Source: Camelus ferus
Taxonomy: Eukaryota
Direction: 5' to 3'
DNA: 64,000 nucleotides
Assembly: GCF_009834535.1 (NCBI RefSeq)
Contig: NC_045704.1
Coordinates: 17,174,001-17,238,000, forward strand
Positions within the stretch are counted from its first letter, which is position 1; each line of letters starts with the position of its first letter. A program made the position numbers and the translations under genes. The notes under the pieces were generated by a model. The model made no database searches. It was given only the letters and a program-made list of their open reading frames with translations, and was not told the DNA's origin. This document shows positions 149 to 26,897 of this stretch, piece by piece.

Positions 149-3100
149 CTTGACGTAGATGATAGGGATGGTCAGCTTGGCCTTGGTAAAATGACGGGCC
201 ACCCGGTACACTGTCTCAGGCACATATTCCAGCACCAGATTTAGATAAAGCTCATCTTTCTGCAAAGGAGGGGTGTGAGGTATTGTGAGAAAAGAGCAAG
301 CAAGGAGGGAGAGGTTTGTGGGGAAAAATAGGGGAAGGGACTGAGTCATGAGAAAGGCAGGCAGGCAAACAAATGGAGTCAAGGTGGAGGACTTCCCTAC
401 ACACCGAGCTCTCACCTTCTCCCCACTGGAGTAGAAAAAGTATCTCAGCCTCACGATATTGCAGTGGTCCAGCTTACGCATAATCTGCAGCTCTCGGTTC
501 TTGGGGGCAAAGGGAAAGAGCTTCAGAAAACAACCAACTCTCCCTGCCTCCCCCCCCAGCACCCCTCACCACAGCCCTGCTCACTGTTCCTGCCAACAGA
601 GCCAAGCAGCCACTCCCTGTGTCCCAGATCCAAGGCCCCCTGGGGCAGCCCCCAATTCCTCACCCCCAACCCACTCCCCTCACACAGAAGCTGGAGGCCT
701 CTGGGCTAACCTAGACCACTTGTATGTGCTTTCTTCAGCCTACTTTTAAAAAGTGTTTGATTTTTTGCTGACATTTGGAAATCAAATGACTTCACGTGTA
801 AATCTAAGCTTTCCAGCTTCTCTTGAAAAATTAGATGATGTGGCCACATGAGGCCCATCTCCCTGCATGGCACATGCAACAGCAGACAGATAGTGGCCAT
901 CCAGTTTACACTGGTCCCCACACCTCCCTATTGCTTTCACTGGAGGCATCTGGACCCTTGGACTCTGGCTTGAATCCTGAGTCCCAGTCTCCAGGCTTCT
1001 AATCCTCATCTTCCCAAAGGGGATCAGCCTCAACCTCTTCCAGAAGACCTAGCCTCAGCATTCTACCCTATGCTCTGTTCCCCTCAGGGGCCTCAGAATT
1101 CCCTATAGTTAGATCCCACTCACTTCTGGGACTTAACTATATTCAAATTCTGACCAGCATCCTGGAGCTTCTCCTGCCCCTGAGAGTTCTCACTGCTGAG
1201 CCCCAGGCTCTGACCTAGATCCCTTCAGCCCAGTTCTCCTACATCCAGACTAGCCTAGGATGCAGACTTCCAGTCCTTCAAACACCGATTATCCATCAGC
1301 TTCCACCTCTGCTATCTTCTTCCATTTCCCTGGGCCTCTGCTAGTTCACAGGGCACCTCTATATGAATGAGGAAAGGGGGACAGAGCCCCATACCAAAGC
1401 ACATGCAGCATAGTCAGGATTTCACCCTGCCCTTGCCAAACCCCTGGGGCAGAGCTTGACCTTCGAAAATACTCATCAGGCCCATCAGCCTCCTTTCTCC
1501 TCTGGGCAGGGTGTAACTTAGTGATTAAGATGAAGGGCCTGGGAATCAGATTCTCGTCTTGACCTTGGGCAATTCTTTTATCTGAGTCTCAGTTTCCAGT
1601 TTCTGCTTACTTAGAATGGGAATGACTACAGTACCTATCCTCAGAGAATCTTTGTGTAAGTTAAACTTGCCTATAAAGCAGTTACAAAGAACAAAAGTGC
1701 AATAAAAGTCAGCTTTGGGCTCTCCTGGAATACACATTCCCATCTTTCACACAACTCACTCCCTTCTTCTCTGGCCCATGTTCAGATCCCCTGTAGAAGC
1801 CCAAGTCCAGCACTCCTGCTGGAGTTCTCTCACCAGTTATGTGCAGTCAAACCTCCTTGTACCTGTTCCCCACAAGCTACCTTGAACCTCTTGTCCTGGA
1901 GAACCTTCTTGATGGCCACCAATTCCCTGGTGTCTGCCAGTCGTGCCTGGTACACGACCCCAAATGAGCCATTGCCAATCACTTTGATGTCTGTGTAAGC
2001 CACCTCCTGGGAGCGTTCCGGGCCTTGGCCTAGAGTGGCTACCACTGTGGTCACCTTCCCGCTGTCACCTGGGGAACAAAGGGAACACAGGATCTACTGA
2101 CCTTTCCCCCTCTGGCCACCACCCCAGCCTAGGGCTGTGAGAGGGAGGGAAATCTCTGCAGAAAGCTCATTGAGGGGGTTCTTTGTCCTTTCCCCATCTT
2201 TAAAGATGAATGCCTCCTAGTGCCCTTTCCCTCCTTTCCTTCATGGAACCCTAAATCCTGCCATCTCCTCCCATATGGGAGGATACTGACACATGAAACC
2301 TCTTGATGTTCAAGGCTTGATAACCCCCAATTTCCACTTCCAGTAAGCAGCATTCACTGGTCCCTCTTGATCTGAGGAGGCACGGACACTCCCAGATGTT
2401 GAATCCATCCACTGTGCACTAACAGCCCTCTGGCCCTTCCTCTGTGGATAGCCTAACCTAACCTCTTCCACCTGATAGCAGTAACCCTGAGGTACTTCTA
2501 CTTTAAGAAATCACTAACCTTTCTCACGGCTCGGGGGATAGTGATGTCAAAGTCCTCCCTAAGTGGAACTGGTAACTTCACCACTGGTTTCTGGTGACAG
2601 AAATGAATGACTCCTCCCATAATGAGTGCTAGTGCTCTGACTCTCACTTTTTGGGGGCAATTAGCTCTTAACCAAGTACTTTGGGGCTAGAAGGAGGCAT
2701 TGATGTGACCTCATCTGTTACCTGTAGTACAGAGCCCCAGAACCCTTCCTGCATATGAGTGGTCTCTAAAGGATGAGCACTATAGTGAGACTGGTGAACC
2801 TGACATCTATCATCAGGGGGCTATCCCAGCCTCAGTCCTTTGAAGGAAAGCTGTAATTCCCAAGTCCATTCTCTGAATGGCAGCAAAATTTGGTGACATT
2901 CTTGGGGGATAGTGACCCCTTTTCTTTGGGGAACTGATGAAAGGTTCCTCCCCTCAACAAGGTCACCGATGAATCAAATCCATTTTGAGGAGCCAGTGAC
3001 ACCTTCTTCTGGAGGAAGGTGATCCTGCATGTCACCGATGAATCAAATCCATTTTGAGGAGCCAGTGACACCTTCTTCTGGAGGAAGGTGATCCTGCATA

Positions 3101-4182
3101 GCTATTTTTCCAGATCACATCATATCTCAGAATAATGAAATGGGTATAATCTCACATCCCTATTCTATAGAGAAGAACTGTGACCCTCTCCCCCTATTCC
3201 ATTTCTTGTGAAAGAAGACCCACTAATCTTTTTTGATTAAGAGTGACTATGGACTTGCTCTGAAAGGTATGCTGACTTCCAATGTGTCCGTATTTCTAAG
3301 AAGTAGCAAGCATTAATTTCCACCATTGAGGGTACAATTCTACATATTATGAACAGGTAATGATACTAGGCCTAGCGTTTTAAAACAGAAGATGACTGGG
3401 TACCAGGTATAGAAAGGCCTGCCCCTGTTCTCTGGGACACAGCAAATCCTAACCTTTGCTTCTAAGTGATATTCACTCCAAATCCCCATGCTCTAAAGAG
3501 GAGCAAATTCAGATTCCCCTTCTGTGGCGATCTTATTCTTGTTGTCTTGGGGAACAATAACCCTTGAGTCCCATTTGCGAGCGATAATGACCCCCTAATT
3601 CTGTTCTCTAATGGATGGCAACATCAGATCCCTGTTTTGAAGGCTCAAGGACCCAAGACTTTAGTACTCGAAAAACAGGAAACTGTGACCCCTGTCTCTT
3701 AGAGGGTTACTAATTCTAATCCCAAACTCCAAGTGATGGTAACCCCCATTCCTTTCTCTGGGAGGGGTAAAGCTCAGATCCCAGTTTAAGTAGGCACAGT
3801 GACCTCGAGCCTCTCTCCGAGAGTAAAGAAGAACTTGATTGACGTCTGAAAGGCTTCAGGGACCCCCGATCTCCACCCGCCACGGGCGCCGTTAATACTC
3901 ACGGCCCAGCTTCACTCCCGGCGGCGGGAAGCTGGTGCCCGCACCGGGGCCGCTACTGCCTCCTCCGCCGCTGCCGCTGGGGCCACCCCCGGAGCTCGGG
4001 GCCACCACGCCCCCGCCCATGGCTCCGACTGACGCCTTCCCGCCGCCGCTGCCGCCTGGGCCGGAGGCCGAGCCCCCGGGGCCGCCGCCGCCGCCGCCTC
4101 CGCCGCCTGGCTCCGCGAACGAGCTGGTCCGCGCCCGGCCCGAGCCCCCGGGGCCGCCCCCTGAAGGCGCGCCACCGCTCAT
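149..4182 (-). CDS. GSK3A: Glycogen synthase kinase-3 alpha, exons 1-4 (3' part lies beyond the window start)
   Basis: Coding exons 4182-3903, 2068-1881, 499-416 and 259-149 (280, 188, 84, 111 nt), all GT-AG and in frame. The Gly-rich N-terminus [20 protein letters not shown] (Ser21 inhibitory motif) is alpha-specific. Kinase motifs [15 protein letters not shown] and [13 protein letters not shown] are present. Confidence 0.98.
730..920. mobile_element. Probable non-autonomous DNA transposon (hAT-like MER) relic
   Basis: ttccagcttctcttgaaaaa..gatgtggc motif typical of old MER elements. A related degenerate motif lies near 60860-61000. Family not assigned. Confidence 0.4.
1511..1670 (+). mobile_element. 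MIR relic
   Basis: gaccttgggcaattc..ctcagtttcc core. Confidence 0.65.
2962..3099. repeat. Perfect 69-bp tandem duplication
   Basis: 2962-3030 is identical to 3031-3099. Confidence 0.95.
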
Positions 4183-5975
4183 GGCGCCGAGCGCAGGCCC
4201 AGGCCGCGGGGCTCGGGCTGCCCGGGCTGCCCCCGCCTCTGCCGCCGCCGCCGCCTCCCCCGGGCTCCGGCCTCTTCCAGGCCGCGCCGCTCGGGCTCCG
4301 GCTCCGGCCCAGCGCCCGCCGCGAGGCACGCTGGGAGATGCAGTCCGCCTTCCCTTCTTGCCGCCGTAGCCGCTCTCCGCCCTCTCAGAGAGCTGCTTGG
4401 CACGCCGGGAAATGGAGTCCGCAAATACCTCAGAGTAGACAGGATGCTAGGTCGCGCTGCACGTCGGGAAATAGAATACTGGGCAGTAAGTTGGCCGACT
4501 GTGCAGACCACGGACTCTGAAGCACTTTCGGAAGCAGAGTTACAGTCTCACACTCACTCTGTTGCGGCAACCGGTCGTTCCTCGGTGTACCTCAGAAATA
4601 AACTCGCAGCCACTCCATCAGTGAGCAGTGTAGGCCTGATGCATTCTGGGACACGGAGTCCAGTCCCTCACTTAGGCTACTGGTTGTTTGCCGACCGGCG
4701 CCAGATGCACTCTGGGAAATTGAGTCCACACTGACGGACCCACAGATATCGGGCCGTGAGGCAAGCCGGGAAATGGAGTCGCCGCCACGCCCTCACCGCA
4801 TTGCAGGTGTAAAGCGACTCCCAAAGCACGCCGGGAAATGGAGTCCTATGTGATTTCCTAAGCCCCAAGTGGATACTGCAGTTCAGGAGATAGGCTAGGA
4901 AATGGAGTAGGTATAGCAGTCCCCCTCCGTTGTACGCTAGGCTGTAGTTCTTACTGGGAAATGTAGTCAGCACCAAGGCCTCAGAGAAGGTATTACATCA
5001 AGCCCTTTTGTCTTCTGGGAAATGGAGTTCAAGGCAGCCTTCCCACTGACTGAGGGAGAAGGGTCTACTAAGGATCCTGAAGCATGCTGGGGACTAGTCC
5101 AGACCGGATCCTGACCCTTTGTGAGAGGAGGCTGCAGAGGCTTGCCGGGAAGTGTAGTCTAATGGGTACCTTCGGGAGAGTGTGAGCGAAAGGTGAAAGA
5201 CGGTAGTCGCCTAGGGGAAACTGAAGAATGTTTCAGTGCTTCTTGTCCCGCCCCCAGGTCCCAAGAAAAGAGCCGAAGTCGATCAGGGGCTGCTGGAAAA
5301 TGGAGTCCAAACACTCTAAGCTCCAAGTGTCCACAAATCCAGGAGAAAAAACCCTTCCCGCAAACAATTTGGGAAACAAAGTTTCCGGCGGTTTCTCAGG
5401 ACTGTCTTGAACCCCTATTCAGGTTTTTACGTTCTTACGCTTTCTAAACTACAGGATCCCGGAAGGCCAAAAAGAAAAGCCGGCTGCTAGAAGTAGCCTC
5501 AGGTTTTTGTGCACGCATTATGTCTCCCCATTTACCGATTAATACCCGGAAGGACGGGAGCCTCAAAGCGCGCTGGGAAACAGAGTTCGTGCGCGCGCGT
5601 GCGTGCGTGCGTGCGTGTCCGTCCGTCCGTCCCGGAAATACTTGGAACCGGAATGAAATCACTCGCAGCTCCCCCTACCTCGTGGAATGATGGGAAATGG
5701 AGTCTCTAGACTTCACTTTAATCAGACCCTGTGATCACACTCACTGTTCTGCCCTTTCTGAAGCCTGAAAAAAGTCTGGGCCACTCGGTCTGTAGCTGAC
5801 CGCAATTCCCAGCCGACACAGACTCCATGGAGCCGGGCTGACAGTAGCGCTAAAGCCTTCTCGAACTACATTAACCAGAAGGCACAGCGCAGGCACACTT
5901 CCGCTCCATTCTCAATGAATGAGGCTATATCGCGCACAGCCTAGAGCGGGTGCTTCTGGGAGTTGTAGTAATTTC
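3880..5975. promoter_or_regulatory. GSK3A CpG island and upstream array of SBS-like (ZNF143/THAP11-type) motifs
   Basis: CpG-dense exon 1, then about 18 copies of a GCAnnCYGGGAAATGKAGTY-like motif between 4400 and 5970. Confidence 0.75.
5588..5632. repeat. (GC)n(GCGT)n(CCGT)n compound microsatellite
   Basis: Read directly from the sequence. Confidence 0.9.
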
Positions 5976-8130
5976 TCAGCCAAACAGTGCCGGCTGCCCC
6001 CTGACGGCGGCTCGGAGTCCAAAGGCAAAAATCTGAATCAAGCCCCAAAGCCTGGGGAATCCTAAACTGGACCAAGACGACCTACAAGGGCTGGCGAGCA
6101 GGGTCGAACTGCGGCAGTTATTTAACGGCCAGAACCCGTGGGACATGCGCAGGGGGCTGCGCGTGGGCAACCGCCAGAGGGGACTGGGGTCCGTGGGAGT
6201 CTGAGGCGTCAGTCTGAGGGAAACTTACCTGAATGCCTATACGAGCCGAGAACGTCGTTGAGGGGTGTTAGAGCGGGTTGTAAGTGGGTGCTCAGGGGAG
6301 TCCATGACTAGGTGAAGTGGTCTTACTGGGAACCAGTGAAGTCAGAGAAGACTTGGGGTGCCTATAAAAGGTCTGTAGAAGACCGAAAAACTACTGGTGA
6401 CTGAGGGGATCTCTGAGGGACCTGAAGAGGTGAGGGATGCTTGAAATGCGTCCGGAAGGAGCTTTGGGAGTCTGTAGGGATGCTAGGGGTTATAGGTATG
6501 AAGAGGGTCTCCGATGGGATGCATTAACTGAAGTGTCATGAGATTTGGACTTTCTACTTGGAATCAGAGATCCCAGAGGATGTGGGAAAGAGCAAGGGTA
6601 TGGTCTTGCAAATACTGAATAGATTTGGATGGGTCATTAAAGATTAGAGAAGCCGCTGGAGTTTTCAAGACCAAATGCCACCTGTGACATCTACTTAGCC
6701 AGAATTTGCCGCAGTAAGTCTGGCTGGGCTGTGGTCTGACCTGAAAGCAGTTCTGGAGCTGAGCACTTTTGAATCCATATTTGACCTGGCTTAGAGGTGC
6801 TTTGAAGGCTCTAGAATCAGGGGCTGAGACTACTAATCAGGGGCTTCCCTCCTCCACAAAGTGATGACATCCCCCTTTCTCCATCACACCACCACCACCA
6901 ACTCAGCTGCATCTGTGTTGCCAGGAGACATGCCTCATCCCAACTTCCAGAAATAGCCCAGTGGCCCCCACCCCAGGGAGTGACTTACATCACCCAGGAG
7001 AGGGAGCAGTTGCCCGCAGGCTGCCACAGGAGCCTGTTTTCTGCCAGTACCCCAGCCCTGGCTCTTCTCTTCACCGCCAACAGACATCATTTGGGACCAC
7101 CCACCCTGGGCAGCATGAAATGAGGATGAAGTGGAGTTGCCAGTTCCTTCCCCCTCAGGGTGAGTTTCAGTGAGGCCAGTCCAACAGGCCCTGAGCCCTC
7201 AGTTCCCACTCCATCTCTTAGCACCTGTGTGGCCTTGGGGAAACCCCTTCCCCTCTCTGGGCCTCAGGCACCTCACCTGCACCAAAGGGATCATGCTGTC
7301 TCTAAGGGCACCTCCAGCTTGGATTCCTCCTCCTGATTCTTTCATCTCTGATTCAAGTTCTCTAACTTGGGCTTCTAGATCTATGGCCTCACTTTTTGGA
7401 TCCTATGACCTTGAGGTCCTGGTCTTGATCCAATCATCCTGGCTTTAGGAAAACTTAGTTGTTGGAAGAACATAGGCTTCAGAGACTGACCTCATTTATA
7501 GTCCTGGCTGGACCTAAGGCCTTGGGCAAGTCATTTAAGTCAGCCACTTGCCCCCACCTTGCTGGTGGAGTGTGTTCCAATGGTTTGATAGAAGATCACT
7601 AAGGTACTTTGCAAGGTTCTACATTCAAGACATACTGCAGGCCTGTTGCCAAAAGGCTCCCAGATTAACTCAGAAGGGCCCTTAAGGAGAGTGATGTGTG
7701 GGAGGACGCTAGAGGTAATGCAAAGGAACTCCAGTCCTCCACCAGAGCCTGGAGGCATGGATAGGAATTCGGAGAGGAAAGGCATTTTAAGGCCGAAGAG
7801 CAAGGGCAATGCTGTGGTGTTTTAGTCCTAAGTGCACCCAAGGATGAGCTGATCCCCCATTTAAGATGGGTGCAGTCAAGAGGGCCAGAGTATGCCTAGG
7901 ACCTTCATCACCAGGTATGGGGAGTTAAGTGCCCCCCCAAAGTCAGGAATTCATTTCCCAGGCCTAGATTTAACCCATTTAGATGGGGTTAGGCCCTCTG
8001 GCAATAAACCCACAGTTGGGGGGTGGGGTCCAGTCCAGGCCCCTGTCCTTAAGAACCAAGCAAAGGCTGTGGCCCTGTGGTGGCTGCACCCAGCACCCAG
8101 GACAGGTCACTGCATCCAAAGGTCCAAAGT

Positions 8131-8136
8131 TTTATT
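8131..8136 (-). terminator. ERF: ERF polyadenylation signal AATAAA
   Basis: tttatt on the + strand, about 850 nt past the stop codon. Confidence 0.75.
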
Positions 8137-8985
8137 GTTTTGAATACATTCTCCAGCAGCCCCCAGATTCCCTCCCCACCACCCTCCATCCCCAATACAG
8201 AATAAGGCTTGACCATAGACCCCCACCCCAGGGGCCCCAGCTGAGAGGCAGAGGGGGCTTCCAGTTTGGTTTCAGGGCACCCCCTCCCCACCCGCCTGCC
8301 TAAGGGCTAGTCCTAGGAGCAGCTGGGGGTGAAGGGTTTGGACCGGTGCTGGGGTGGGGAGGAGAGGGATAGCAGGCACTTGTAGAGATTTGTGGCCTAT
8401 GGGCGGCACCCCTCACCCTCCTCTGCCCCCCACCCTCCCCAACACGGAATTTTTGGTTCATCATTAAAATGTCCCTCCCTCCCCTGCTGCAACCCTGTAG
8501 GGTATGAGAAATCCAGGCACTCATGGCCCCTGGAGGGGCAGGGAAGGCAGGACTGGGGCTGAGGATGGCCGGGGGGTGGAGAGAGGTACAGGAGGCAGAG
8601 AACAGGGAGGGAGACAAGGCTTTACTTCCTAAACGATTGTAATAAAAAAGTTCCTGGGCTTTGAGGCCAGAACCTCAGTTCAAATATAAATTCCCCAGAA
8701 TGGAGGTGGCCCCCTTAAGTTCCCCCTCCCTCCCCCCACCACCACTTTGCCCGGAGCTTAGTAACCCATGGAGACAGGGGACAGCCCCCAGCCCTGGGCA
8801 CCCACCCACCCACACCATTAAAAAAAAAAAAAGAAATTAAAAGTTTTATACAAAACATGGGGGAGGGAAAAGGGAGGAGGCAGGGAAGAGACTAGAAAGC
8901 TGCCCTCACCTCCAGGGCATGGGGGGGTTAAGGCAGCAAAAGAAGCATGGGGGGTGGGGGGAACGGGGTCCCCTGTCCACAGCCC

Positions 8986-15529
<6,544 letters not shown>

Positions 15530-26290: not shown

Positions 26291-26897
26291 GTGAGTCGGG
26301 GCCCTGGGTCTAAAATGCTCCTAGGGTCCAGAGAGACTTACGAGGAACTGCTCTTTCGACTTTTTCTCCTCGCACGGGTTCTTTGGAGCTCCAGGCACTC
26401 TGTCACATGGGAGTTGTAGTCTGCCACGTACTGTTTACTATGGGCCGGAGACGTAAGAAGACTACCACTCCCAGCAGGAATTGCGACTAGCCGGTCAACA
26501 AACGCTCAGGCCACGCCTTCTAAGCCTGTTGATTGGAGAGCCCTACCCTTAGCCCCTCCTCCTTGCATTTCACTGGCTACTGTCCCTCACAGAGGCTGGT
26601 TCCGGCCTAGAGTGCAAGGTTACTGGGTACTGTATTCGTCATTCGGCACTAAGAAGGCTCGCGATTGGTCAATACTGGTGTCCATCGCTTGTTGTAGGGC
26701 AGGACCCTAGGCTGATCAGGCGGTCGTAGGCTCAGGTTGGTGTCGGTCCCAGAGGGAGGCTGATCTTGGACTTTGGCTCCTCCCCCTAGCGCTGCCGGGT
26801 GGGCGCGATTGGTTGTGGCAAACGTCGCTCGTCGTTGAGAGGCGGAGCCGACGAGGCTCCGAATATCTATTGGCCTAGGACGGCGCCGGTCAGCGGG

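Follow-up and report, generated by a model that had tools for sequence, protein, structure and literature searches.

The GSK3A promoter and its repeated site

The window is a stretch of 64,000 nucleotides from the genome of Camelus ferus (GCF_009834535.1, contig NC_045704.1, positions 17,174,001 to 17,238,000 of the forward strand), and all positions given here are counted from its first nucleotide. A preliminary description of this DNA had placed an array of transcription factor-binding sites directly upstream of GSK3A, and this location is confirmed by the first coding exon of that gene, which lies on the minus strand with its ATG at 4182 and matches GSK3A of Manis; seven species have their annotated GSK3A start at the aligned position. 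The transcription start site of GSK3A is probably near 4300–4330, and the upstream neighbour is ERF. Open reading frames that extend over the array (4179–4976) were considered as coding sequence and rejected as reading-frame noise, the DNA being non-coding, and a search of 3000–9000 against Rfam (E up to 0.1) returned no RNA family, so that an array of snRNA-type genes is not indicated. Between 96% and 100% of the 31-mers sampled from 4300–5800 were found in contigs of four RNA-seq runs (X15–X18), which represents either upstream transcription or carry-over of DNA.

Table 1. Features of the GSK3A promoter region in the window. Scores are those of the position weight matrix (PWM) described in the text; conservation is identity to the window among placentals.
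Feature	Position	Strand	Evidence
GSK3A coding exon 1, ATG 4182	3895–4182	-	ORF; BLASTP to Manis GSK3A (P0175)
Unit 1, proximal SBS2-like site beside the 5'UTR	4325–4346	-	gene-sense sequence ACTGCATCTCCCAGCGTGC; PWM 27.7–28.4 bits
Unit 2, consensus copy ACTCCATTTCCCGGCGTGC	4399–4420	-	4400–4420 identical to 4826–4846
Unit 3	4458–4479	-	21.4 bits
Unit 4, decayed in the Camelus ferus window	4521–4542	-	7.7–10 bits
Unit 5, dead copy still in phase	4585–4606	-	sub-threshold in all species
Unit 6, nearest to the canonical ZNF143 half, TCCCAGAATGCAT	4640–4661	-	PWM, sequence
Unit 7	4706–4727	-	PWM
Unit 8, exact 13-mer core	4760–4781	-	core match
Conserved spacer block with CCACGCCC, adjoining a CAGGTG E-box	4783–4804	.	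conservation 0.88 (spacer mean 0.67)
Unit 9, consensus copy	4825–4846	-	conservation 0.95
Unit 10, CCTAG variant without the 3' TGC half	4889–4910	-	conservation 0.94
Unit 11, true ACTACA copy, strict M4 fit	4948–4969	-	T (ACTACA) in 7/7 placentals
Unit 12	5009–5030	-	conservation 0.95
Unit 13, variant with ACTACA part 2 nt shorter and intact CCCAGCATGC (SBS1-like) half	5082–5103	-	low PWM, conservation 0.89
Unit 14, ACTACA copy, strict M4 fit, last unit of the regular array	5139–5160	-	PWM
Outlying same-orientation copy, 148 bp past unit 14	5287–5308	-	26–27.7 bits
Outlying copy near small CpG-rich patch and (GCGT)n/(GTCC)n microsatellite	5567–5588	-	PWM
Outlying copy, exact 13-mer core	5684–5705	-	core match, PWM
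Opposite-orientation pair of weaker sites, distal edge of the cluster	5798–5877	+	15.5 and 10.6 bits
Most distal same-orientation copy, strict M4 fit	5950–5971	-	PWM
ERF last coding exon, upstream neighbour	8986–10287	-	ORF; anchor for orthologous intervals

The GSK3A promoter contains approximately 14 copies of a THAP11/ZNF143-type motif, each 20–22 bp long, evenly spaced and in the same direction (Table 1); 12 strong copies and two or three decayed ones share a single orientation at 4325–5160. The core of the motif on the plus strand is GGGAAATGGAGTC, which in the sense of GSK3A is of the SBS2 or Ronin-binding-motif (RBM) type. This core has four exact matches on the plus strand, and matches with one to three mismatches at 4333, 4466, 4648, 4714, 4897, 4956, 5017, 5147, 5295 and 5575, the orientation being constant throughout. 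At all 13 anchor positions listed in the preliminary description the motif is present, intact or decayed, and the identity of 21 out of 21 nucleotides claimed for 4400–4420 and 4826–4846 is exact, but the list lacked the copies at 4333, 5295, 5575, 5692 and 5958 and the opposite-orientation pair at about 5798–5877. This pair has a similar counterpart in the corresponding position of Ovis, Equus, cat, Dasypus and Chrysochloris, and may be the start region of a divergent transcript. A second small CpG-rich patch (5400–5650, CpG observed/expected 1.15–1.35), some 1.3 kb upstream of the ATG of GSK3A, encloses (GCGT)n and (GTCC)n microsatellites at 5588–5632.

The concentration of these sites upstream of GSK3A far exceeds expectation. 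With up to two mismatches allowed, YGGGAAATGKAGTY has 19 matches in the 64 kb window compared to 2.6 expected, a number that none of 100 shuffled sequences reached, and 13 of the 19 are on the plus strand at 4332–5704. A PWM trained on the window's own copies of the motif has 14 matches that reach 12 bits on the plus strand of 4300–6000, compared to 0.02 expected from shuffles, and no match above 16 bits in the remainder of the window. Elsewhere in the window, two SBS-like sites of opposite orientation (26408–26421 on the plus strand and approximately 26451–26472 on the minus strand) are separated by about 60 bp; one is a strict M4 site (ACTACAACTCCCA), and this pair may be the bidirectional promoter of another gene. 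Metagenome contigs were also scanned for two copies of the motif 35–62 bp apart, and none of the 70 loci obtained is homologous to 4250–6100 by blastn.

The periodicity of about 62 bp given in the preliminary description is upheld: when only the 11 strong sites of 4333–5147 are the input, the best period is 61.75–62 bp with a Rayleigh R of 0.93, which was reached by none of 5000 random placements. The 13 spacings that result when three decayed units are included range from 54 to 74 bp, with a mean of 62.6 bp and a coefficient of variation of 0.10. The sites had been proposed to lie on one face of the DNA, and such a helically phased array is ruled out by a Rayleigh R of 0.05–0.08 at 10.5 bp; the spacings divided by 10.5 range from 5.1 to 7.05, so that spacings of 54–74 bp cover every rotational setting.

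Homology along the whole unit, as expected of a tandem repeat, is not found, whereas a regular period and a constant orientation are. Tandem Repeats Finder with a minimum score of 30 called no 62-bp array, only short GC-rich microsatellites, because the homology of the units outside the 22-bp site is almost erased. The earlier view that the spacers have no detectable similarity holds insofar as what remains is too weak for that program, but needs correction insofar as the spacers have a faint in-register identity of 0.28–0.31 compared to 0.25–0.26 in shuffled sequences (z of about 3–4), which is maximal at zero shift; the spacers start pyrimidine-rich and end G-rich. The only strongly conserved spacer block of the array, at 4783–4804, contains CCACGCCC, which we take to be a putative SP/KLF-type GC/CACCC box.

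Composition of the individual sites

The consensus of the copies in the sense of GSK3A is GGACTCCATTTCCCGGCGTGC, and its architecture is that of the 25-bp SBS2 element, in which ACTACA is followed by TTCCCA and then by a TGC-containing ZNF143 half; the assignment of the motif to the extended Staf-binding type in the preliminary description is supported. The SBS2 and TBS reference sequences used for comparison, including the THAP11 site ACTACANNTCCCA, are from PMC3627581. The copies depart from the canonical element in a characteristic way. Most of them read ACTCCA instead of ACTACA, as had been noted previously, and the strict M4/TBS sequence ACTAYRNNNCCCR fits only three of 18 copies (units 11 and 14 and the copy at 5958), the others reading ACTCCA, ACTGCA or ACTCAA. 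The central TTCCC[AG]G is retained in constant register by about 14 of the 18 copies, many of the proximal ones having CCCGG in place of CCCAG, and in half of the proximal copies the ZNF143 core TGGGA is replaced by CGGGA. The TGC half (as xGTGC, AATGC or CATGC) is present in nine or ten copies, namely units 1–4, 6–9 and 13, and is absent or altered in units 10–12 and in most of the distal copies. Judged by sequence, the array is a mixture of full SBS2-like sites with sites predicted to comprise the THAP11 half only.

Single SBS2/M4/Ronin sites in housekeeping promoters have the same 25-bp architecture (Ngondo-Mbongo et al. 2013, PMC3627581; PMC5006282), but occur as one or a few copies, in contrast to the 14–18 copies of the GSK3A promoter, most of which have ACTCCA and many of which have CCCGG for CCCAG.

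Conservation across mammals and growth of the array

The interval between ERF and GSK3A was located through ERF proteins in Peromyscus, Ovis, Dasypus, Equus, Prionailurus (cat), Chrysochloris and Vombatus (wombat), and through GSK3A proteins in the platypus and the lizard Sceloporus, because the ERF-anchored loci of a turtle and of Xenopus are not syntenic with GSK3A. In all seven of the ERF-anchored species, 12–17 sites of the same orientation are found in the 1.5–2.3 kb upstream of the GSK3A start codon. Among placentals the units correspond one to one and the spacings are nearly equal (about 74, 63, 63, ..., 66–68, 54, 65, 63, 59 and 60 bp), the run of 66–68, 54, 65, 63, 59 and 60 bp being found in Ovis, Equus, cat and Peromyscus, while Dasypus and Chrysochloris deviate from it or lack one unit. 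In Chrysochloris, one unit of the pair at 4714 and 4768 is missing, the distance between the surrounding sites being approximately 61 bp shorter than in the window (124 bp compared to 185 bp); Dasypus apparently also lacks one unit. In Chrysochloris, Dasypus, wombat and platypus the periodicity test did not reach significance, and many of the wombat spacings are within 51–74 bp.

An alignment of several mammals, which had been suggested as a check in the preliminary description, found conserved motifs, diverged spacers, nearly constant spacings and fewer insertions and deletions than in the flank. When 2 kb of seven placentals are aligned with MAFFT, with local shifts for Peromyscus and Dasypus, identity to the window is 0.84 in the motifs, 0.67 in the spacers (Mann-Whitney p = 4e-21) and 0.60 in distal non-motif sequence, in agreement with the proposal that only the factor-binding part of an ancient tandem repeat was kept. 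Conservation of the more distal units 9–12 is 0.82–0.95. Compared to the distal flank, the array has two to four times fewer indel events per kb in Equus and Ovis and about 1.5 times fewer in the cat, with a smaller difference in the other species; in Ovis and Equus, array and distal flank do not differ in overall identity. Orthologous units across placentals share the same base, G or T depending on the unit, at the variable position of ACT[C/A]CA. Unit 1 scores at least 24 bits in all six of the other placentals, and the orthologue of unit 3 scores 19–33 bits in Peromyscus, Ovis, Dasypus and Equus, where the value for Dasypus may be due to an alignment shift from unit 2. Unit 4, which is decayed in the window, scores 19.6 bits in Dasypus, 16.9 bits in the cat and 15.2 bits in the placental majority consensus, and at the position of unit 5 the placental consensus still reads AGAAATGTAGT.

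Sites of the same orientation number one in Sceloporus, five in the platypus, 9–13 in the wombat and 10–12 (within 1.1 kb) in placentals. The single proximal site of Sceloporus, about 156 bp upstream of the ATG, has the position and orientation of unit 1. As far as can be told from the genomes compared, the array is common to all mammals examined and is kept site by site, being established in marsupials and placentals and having its start in monotremes. Its most likely origin is tandem amplification of a unit of approximately 62 bp bearing the proximal site that was already present in the amniote ancestor. Tandem amplification is suggested by the combination of faint in-register spacer similarity, constant orientation and period, and is put forward conditionally because positional composition, not homology, could account for the spacer signal. 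Amplification would have been stepwise, beginning before the monotremes split off and largely complete before the placental radiation, after which purifying selection would have held the sites of 20–22 bp, and unit length less strictly, as the spacers drifted.

There is an outside chance that the spacing of approximately 62 bp is itself selected, either as a ruler for higher-order assembly of THAP11, HCFC1 and ZNF143 or by a fit of three units per nucleosome repeat. If true, this would explain how the length of the spacers has been kept for more than 100 million years without their sequence, and why losses apparently occur in unit-sized steps.

The array resembles a minisatellite or tandem repeat in its head-to-tail units of constant length and in the apparent unit-sized losses of Dasypus and Chrysochloris, but its copies are orthologous across placentals instead of turning over, and little homology is left beyond the 22-bp site. 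Homotypic clusters in vertebrate promoters bring together many sites for one transcription factor within about 1 kb; the GSK3A array has the same packing, but differs from a typical cluster in its strict co-orientation, regular spacing and traceable origin by tandem duplication. In the turtle Lepidochelys kempii (L078:19380–19575), SBS-type sites near a promoter have been multiplied independently by tandem duplication: a young tandem repeat of approximately 52 bp lies downstream of ERF and upstream of a cation-ATPase gene; its unit bears the SBS-like site GGACTCGGTTTCCCGGCGGCC (one copy reads AACTACATTTCCCGG), and at least four copies are present, running into an assembly gap.

A probable multivalent platform and its alternatives

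The array is real and conserved, and is largely already known as a promoter "hub" of the mouse, contrary to the belief of the preliminary description that it was undescribed. The core promoter of mouse Gsk3a has 11 RBM sequences and was reported as a "hierarchical" Ronin hub (Dejosez et al. 2023, PMC10329844). Ronin ChIA-PET in mouse ES cells connects the Gsk3a promoter to 15 neighbouring promoters; the number of RBM sequences correlates with the number of loops and with the loss of expression upon Ronin knockout; and Ronin forms puncta at the Gsk3a locus and circularises DNA in vitro, which Zfp143 and YY1 do not (PMC10329844). The published cluster is equated with the array described here because the 11 sites of the same orientation in the murine Apodemus, and likewise 11 in Peromyscus, match the 11 RBM sequences; the gene, the position and the type of motif are also alike. 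The number of RBM-type sites in the Camelus ferus promoter, 14 PWM matches of at least 12 bits, would be in keeping with such a hub. The words "tandem" and "spacing" are absent from the main text of PMC10329844 (Figure S4A aside), and a literature search that paired GSK3A with ZNF143 or THAP11 found no description beyond the published mouse cluster. Relative to that cluster, the present comparison concerns other species, and the features that appear to be additions are the register of 62 bp, the shared orientation, the unit-by-unit correspondence across placentals, the division between full proximal and half distal sites, and the series from one to five to approximately 13 sites.

The array is probably the orthologue of the multi-site Ronin/THAP11-ZNF143 (SBS2/RBM) cluster of GSK3A, amplified in tandem and serving as a multivalent platform for a hub. 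The array itself, its period, orientation and orthology, the greater conservation of motifs than of spacers, and its growth are results of the present analysis, and factor occupancy and hub behaviour are from the literature; by analogy, the hub function established in the mouse would apply to Camelus ferus. The array would be a landing platform of many sites in the same orientation. Its proximal copies (nine or ten) would keep both halves, with ACTMCA-TTCCC for THAP11/HCFC1 and CCCRG plus TGC for ZNF143, and most of the distal copies would keep the THAP11-type half only. Many dimerising THAP11/HCFC1 complexes side by side could then turn the promoter into a hub, holding neighbouring housekeeping promoters together and raising the local concentration of the transcription machinery.

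Human GSK3A rises upon loss of ZNF143, so the net effect of the array may be of either sign, and an explanation as a roadblock or buffer is kept for this reason. According to this explanation, which is judged unlikely, the tightly bound sites, especially unit 1 in the region of the transcription start site, damp or buffer initiation at GSK3A, compete with stronger activators (ETS, SP1) that have motifs overlapping the units, and cap expression. ZNF143 is bound at the human GSK3A promoter by ChIP, and its acute loss from human cells increases GSK3A transcription instead of reducing it, GSK3A being among 28 promoter-bound genes that rise, for which replacement by ETS/SP factors at overlapping sites was proposed (ZNF143 degron preprint). 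Sequence features of the array that agree with such competition are the GGAA cores in the units, the sequence of unit 14 (GGGAAGTG) and the SP/KLF-like character of the sole conserved spacer block, and THAP11 is mainly repressive on SBS2 sites (PMC3627581). Against this, 14 conserved copies exceed the need of a single roadblock.

That another factor (YY1 through CCAT, RBPJ through TGGGAA, ZNF76, an ETS factor or another) is the main reader of the conserved ACTCCATTTCC variant, with the likeness to ZNF143/THAP11 sites being a matter of ancestry, is improbable. The consensus of YY1 prefers GCCAT, and the units read TCCAT. The retention of C for A unit by unit for approximately 100 million years and the strict M4 fit of only three copies would be accounted for by such a factor, and RBPJ binds SBS sites that contain TTCCCA in vitro (PMC3627581), but the orthologous array of the mouse is a top Ronin ChIP and ChIA-PET anchor, and YY1 was no substitute for Ronin in the looping assay (PMC10329844). 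Very improbable is a mere relic, that is, a minisatellite in decay, with function left only in one or two proximal sites and the rest seemingly conserved through slow promoter evolution: the decay of units 4, 5 and 13 and the equal identity of array and distal flank in Ovis and Equus would fit it, but within the same 840 bp the motifs are far better kept than the spacers, even in units 9–12 (0.82–0.95), the alignment contradicts equal substitution rates of motifs and spacers, and the array persists in both the marsupial and the placental lineages.

With the multivalent platform as the preferred reading, the contribution made here is to the anatomy and history of the array; its existence and hub behaviour had been published for the mouse, and it does not represent a novel type of element. 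The GSK3A promoter is a textbook-size case of a housekeeping promoter made from many copies of one site, and the array is a natural system for the study of how the number and spacing of sites set the strength of a promoter hub.
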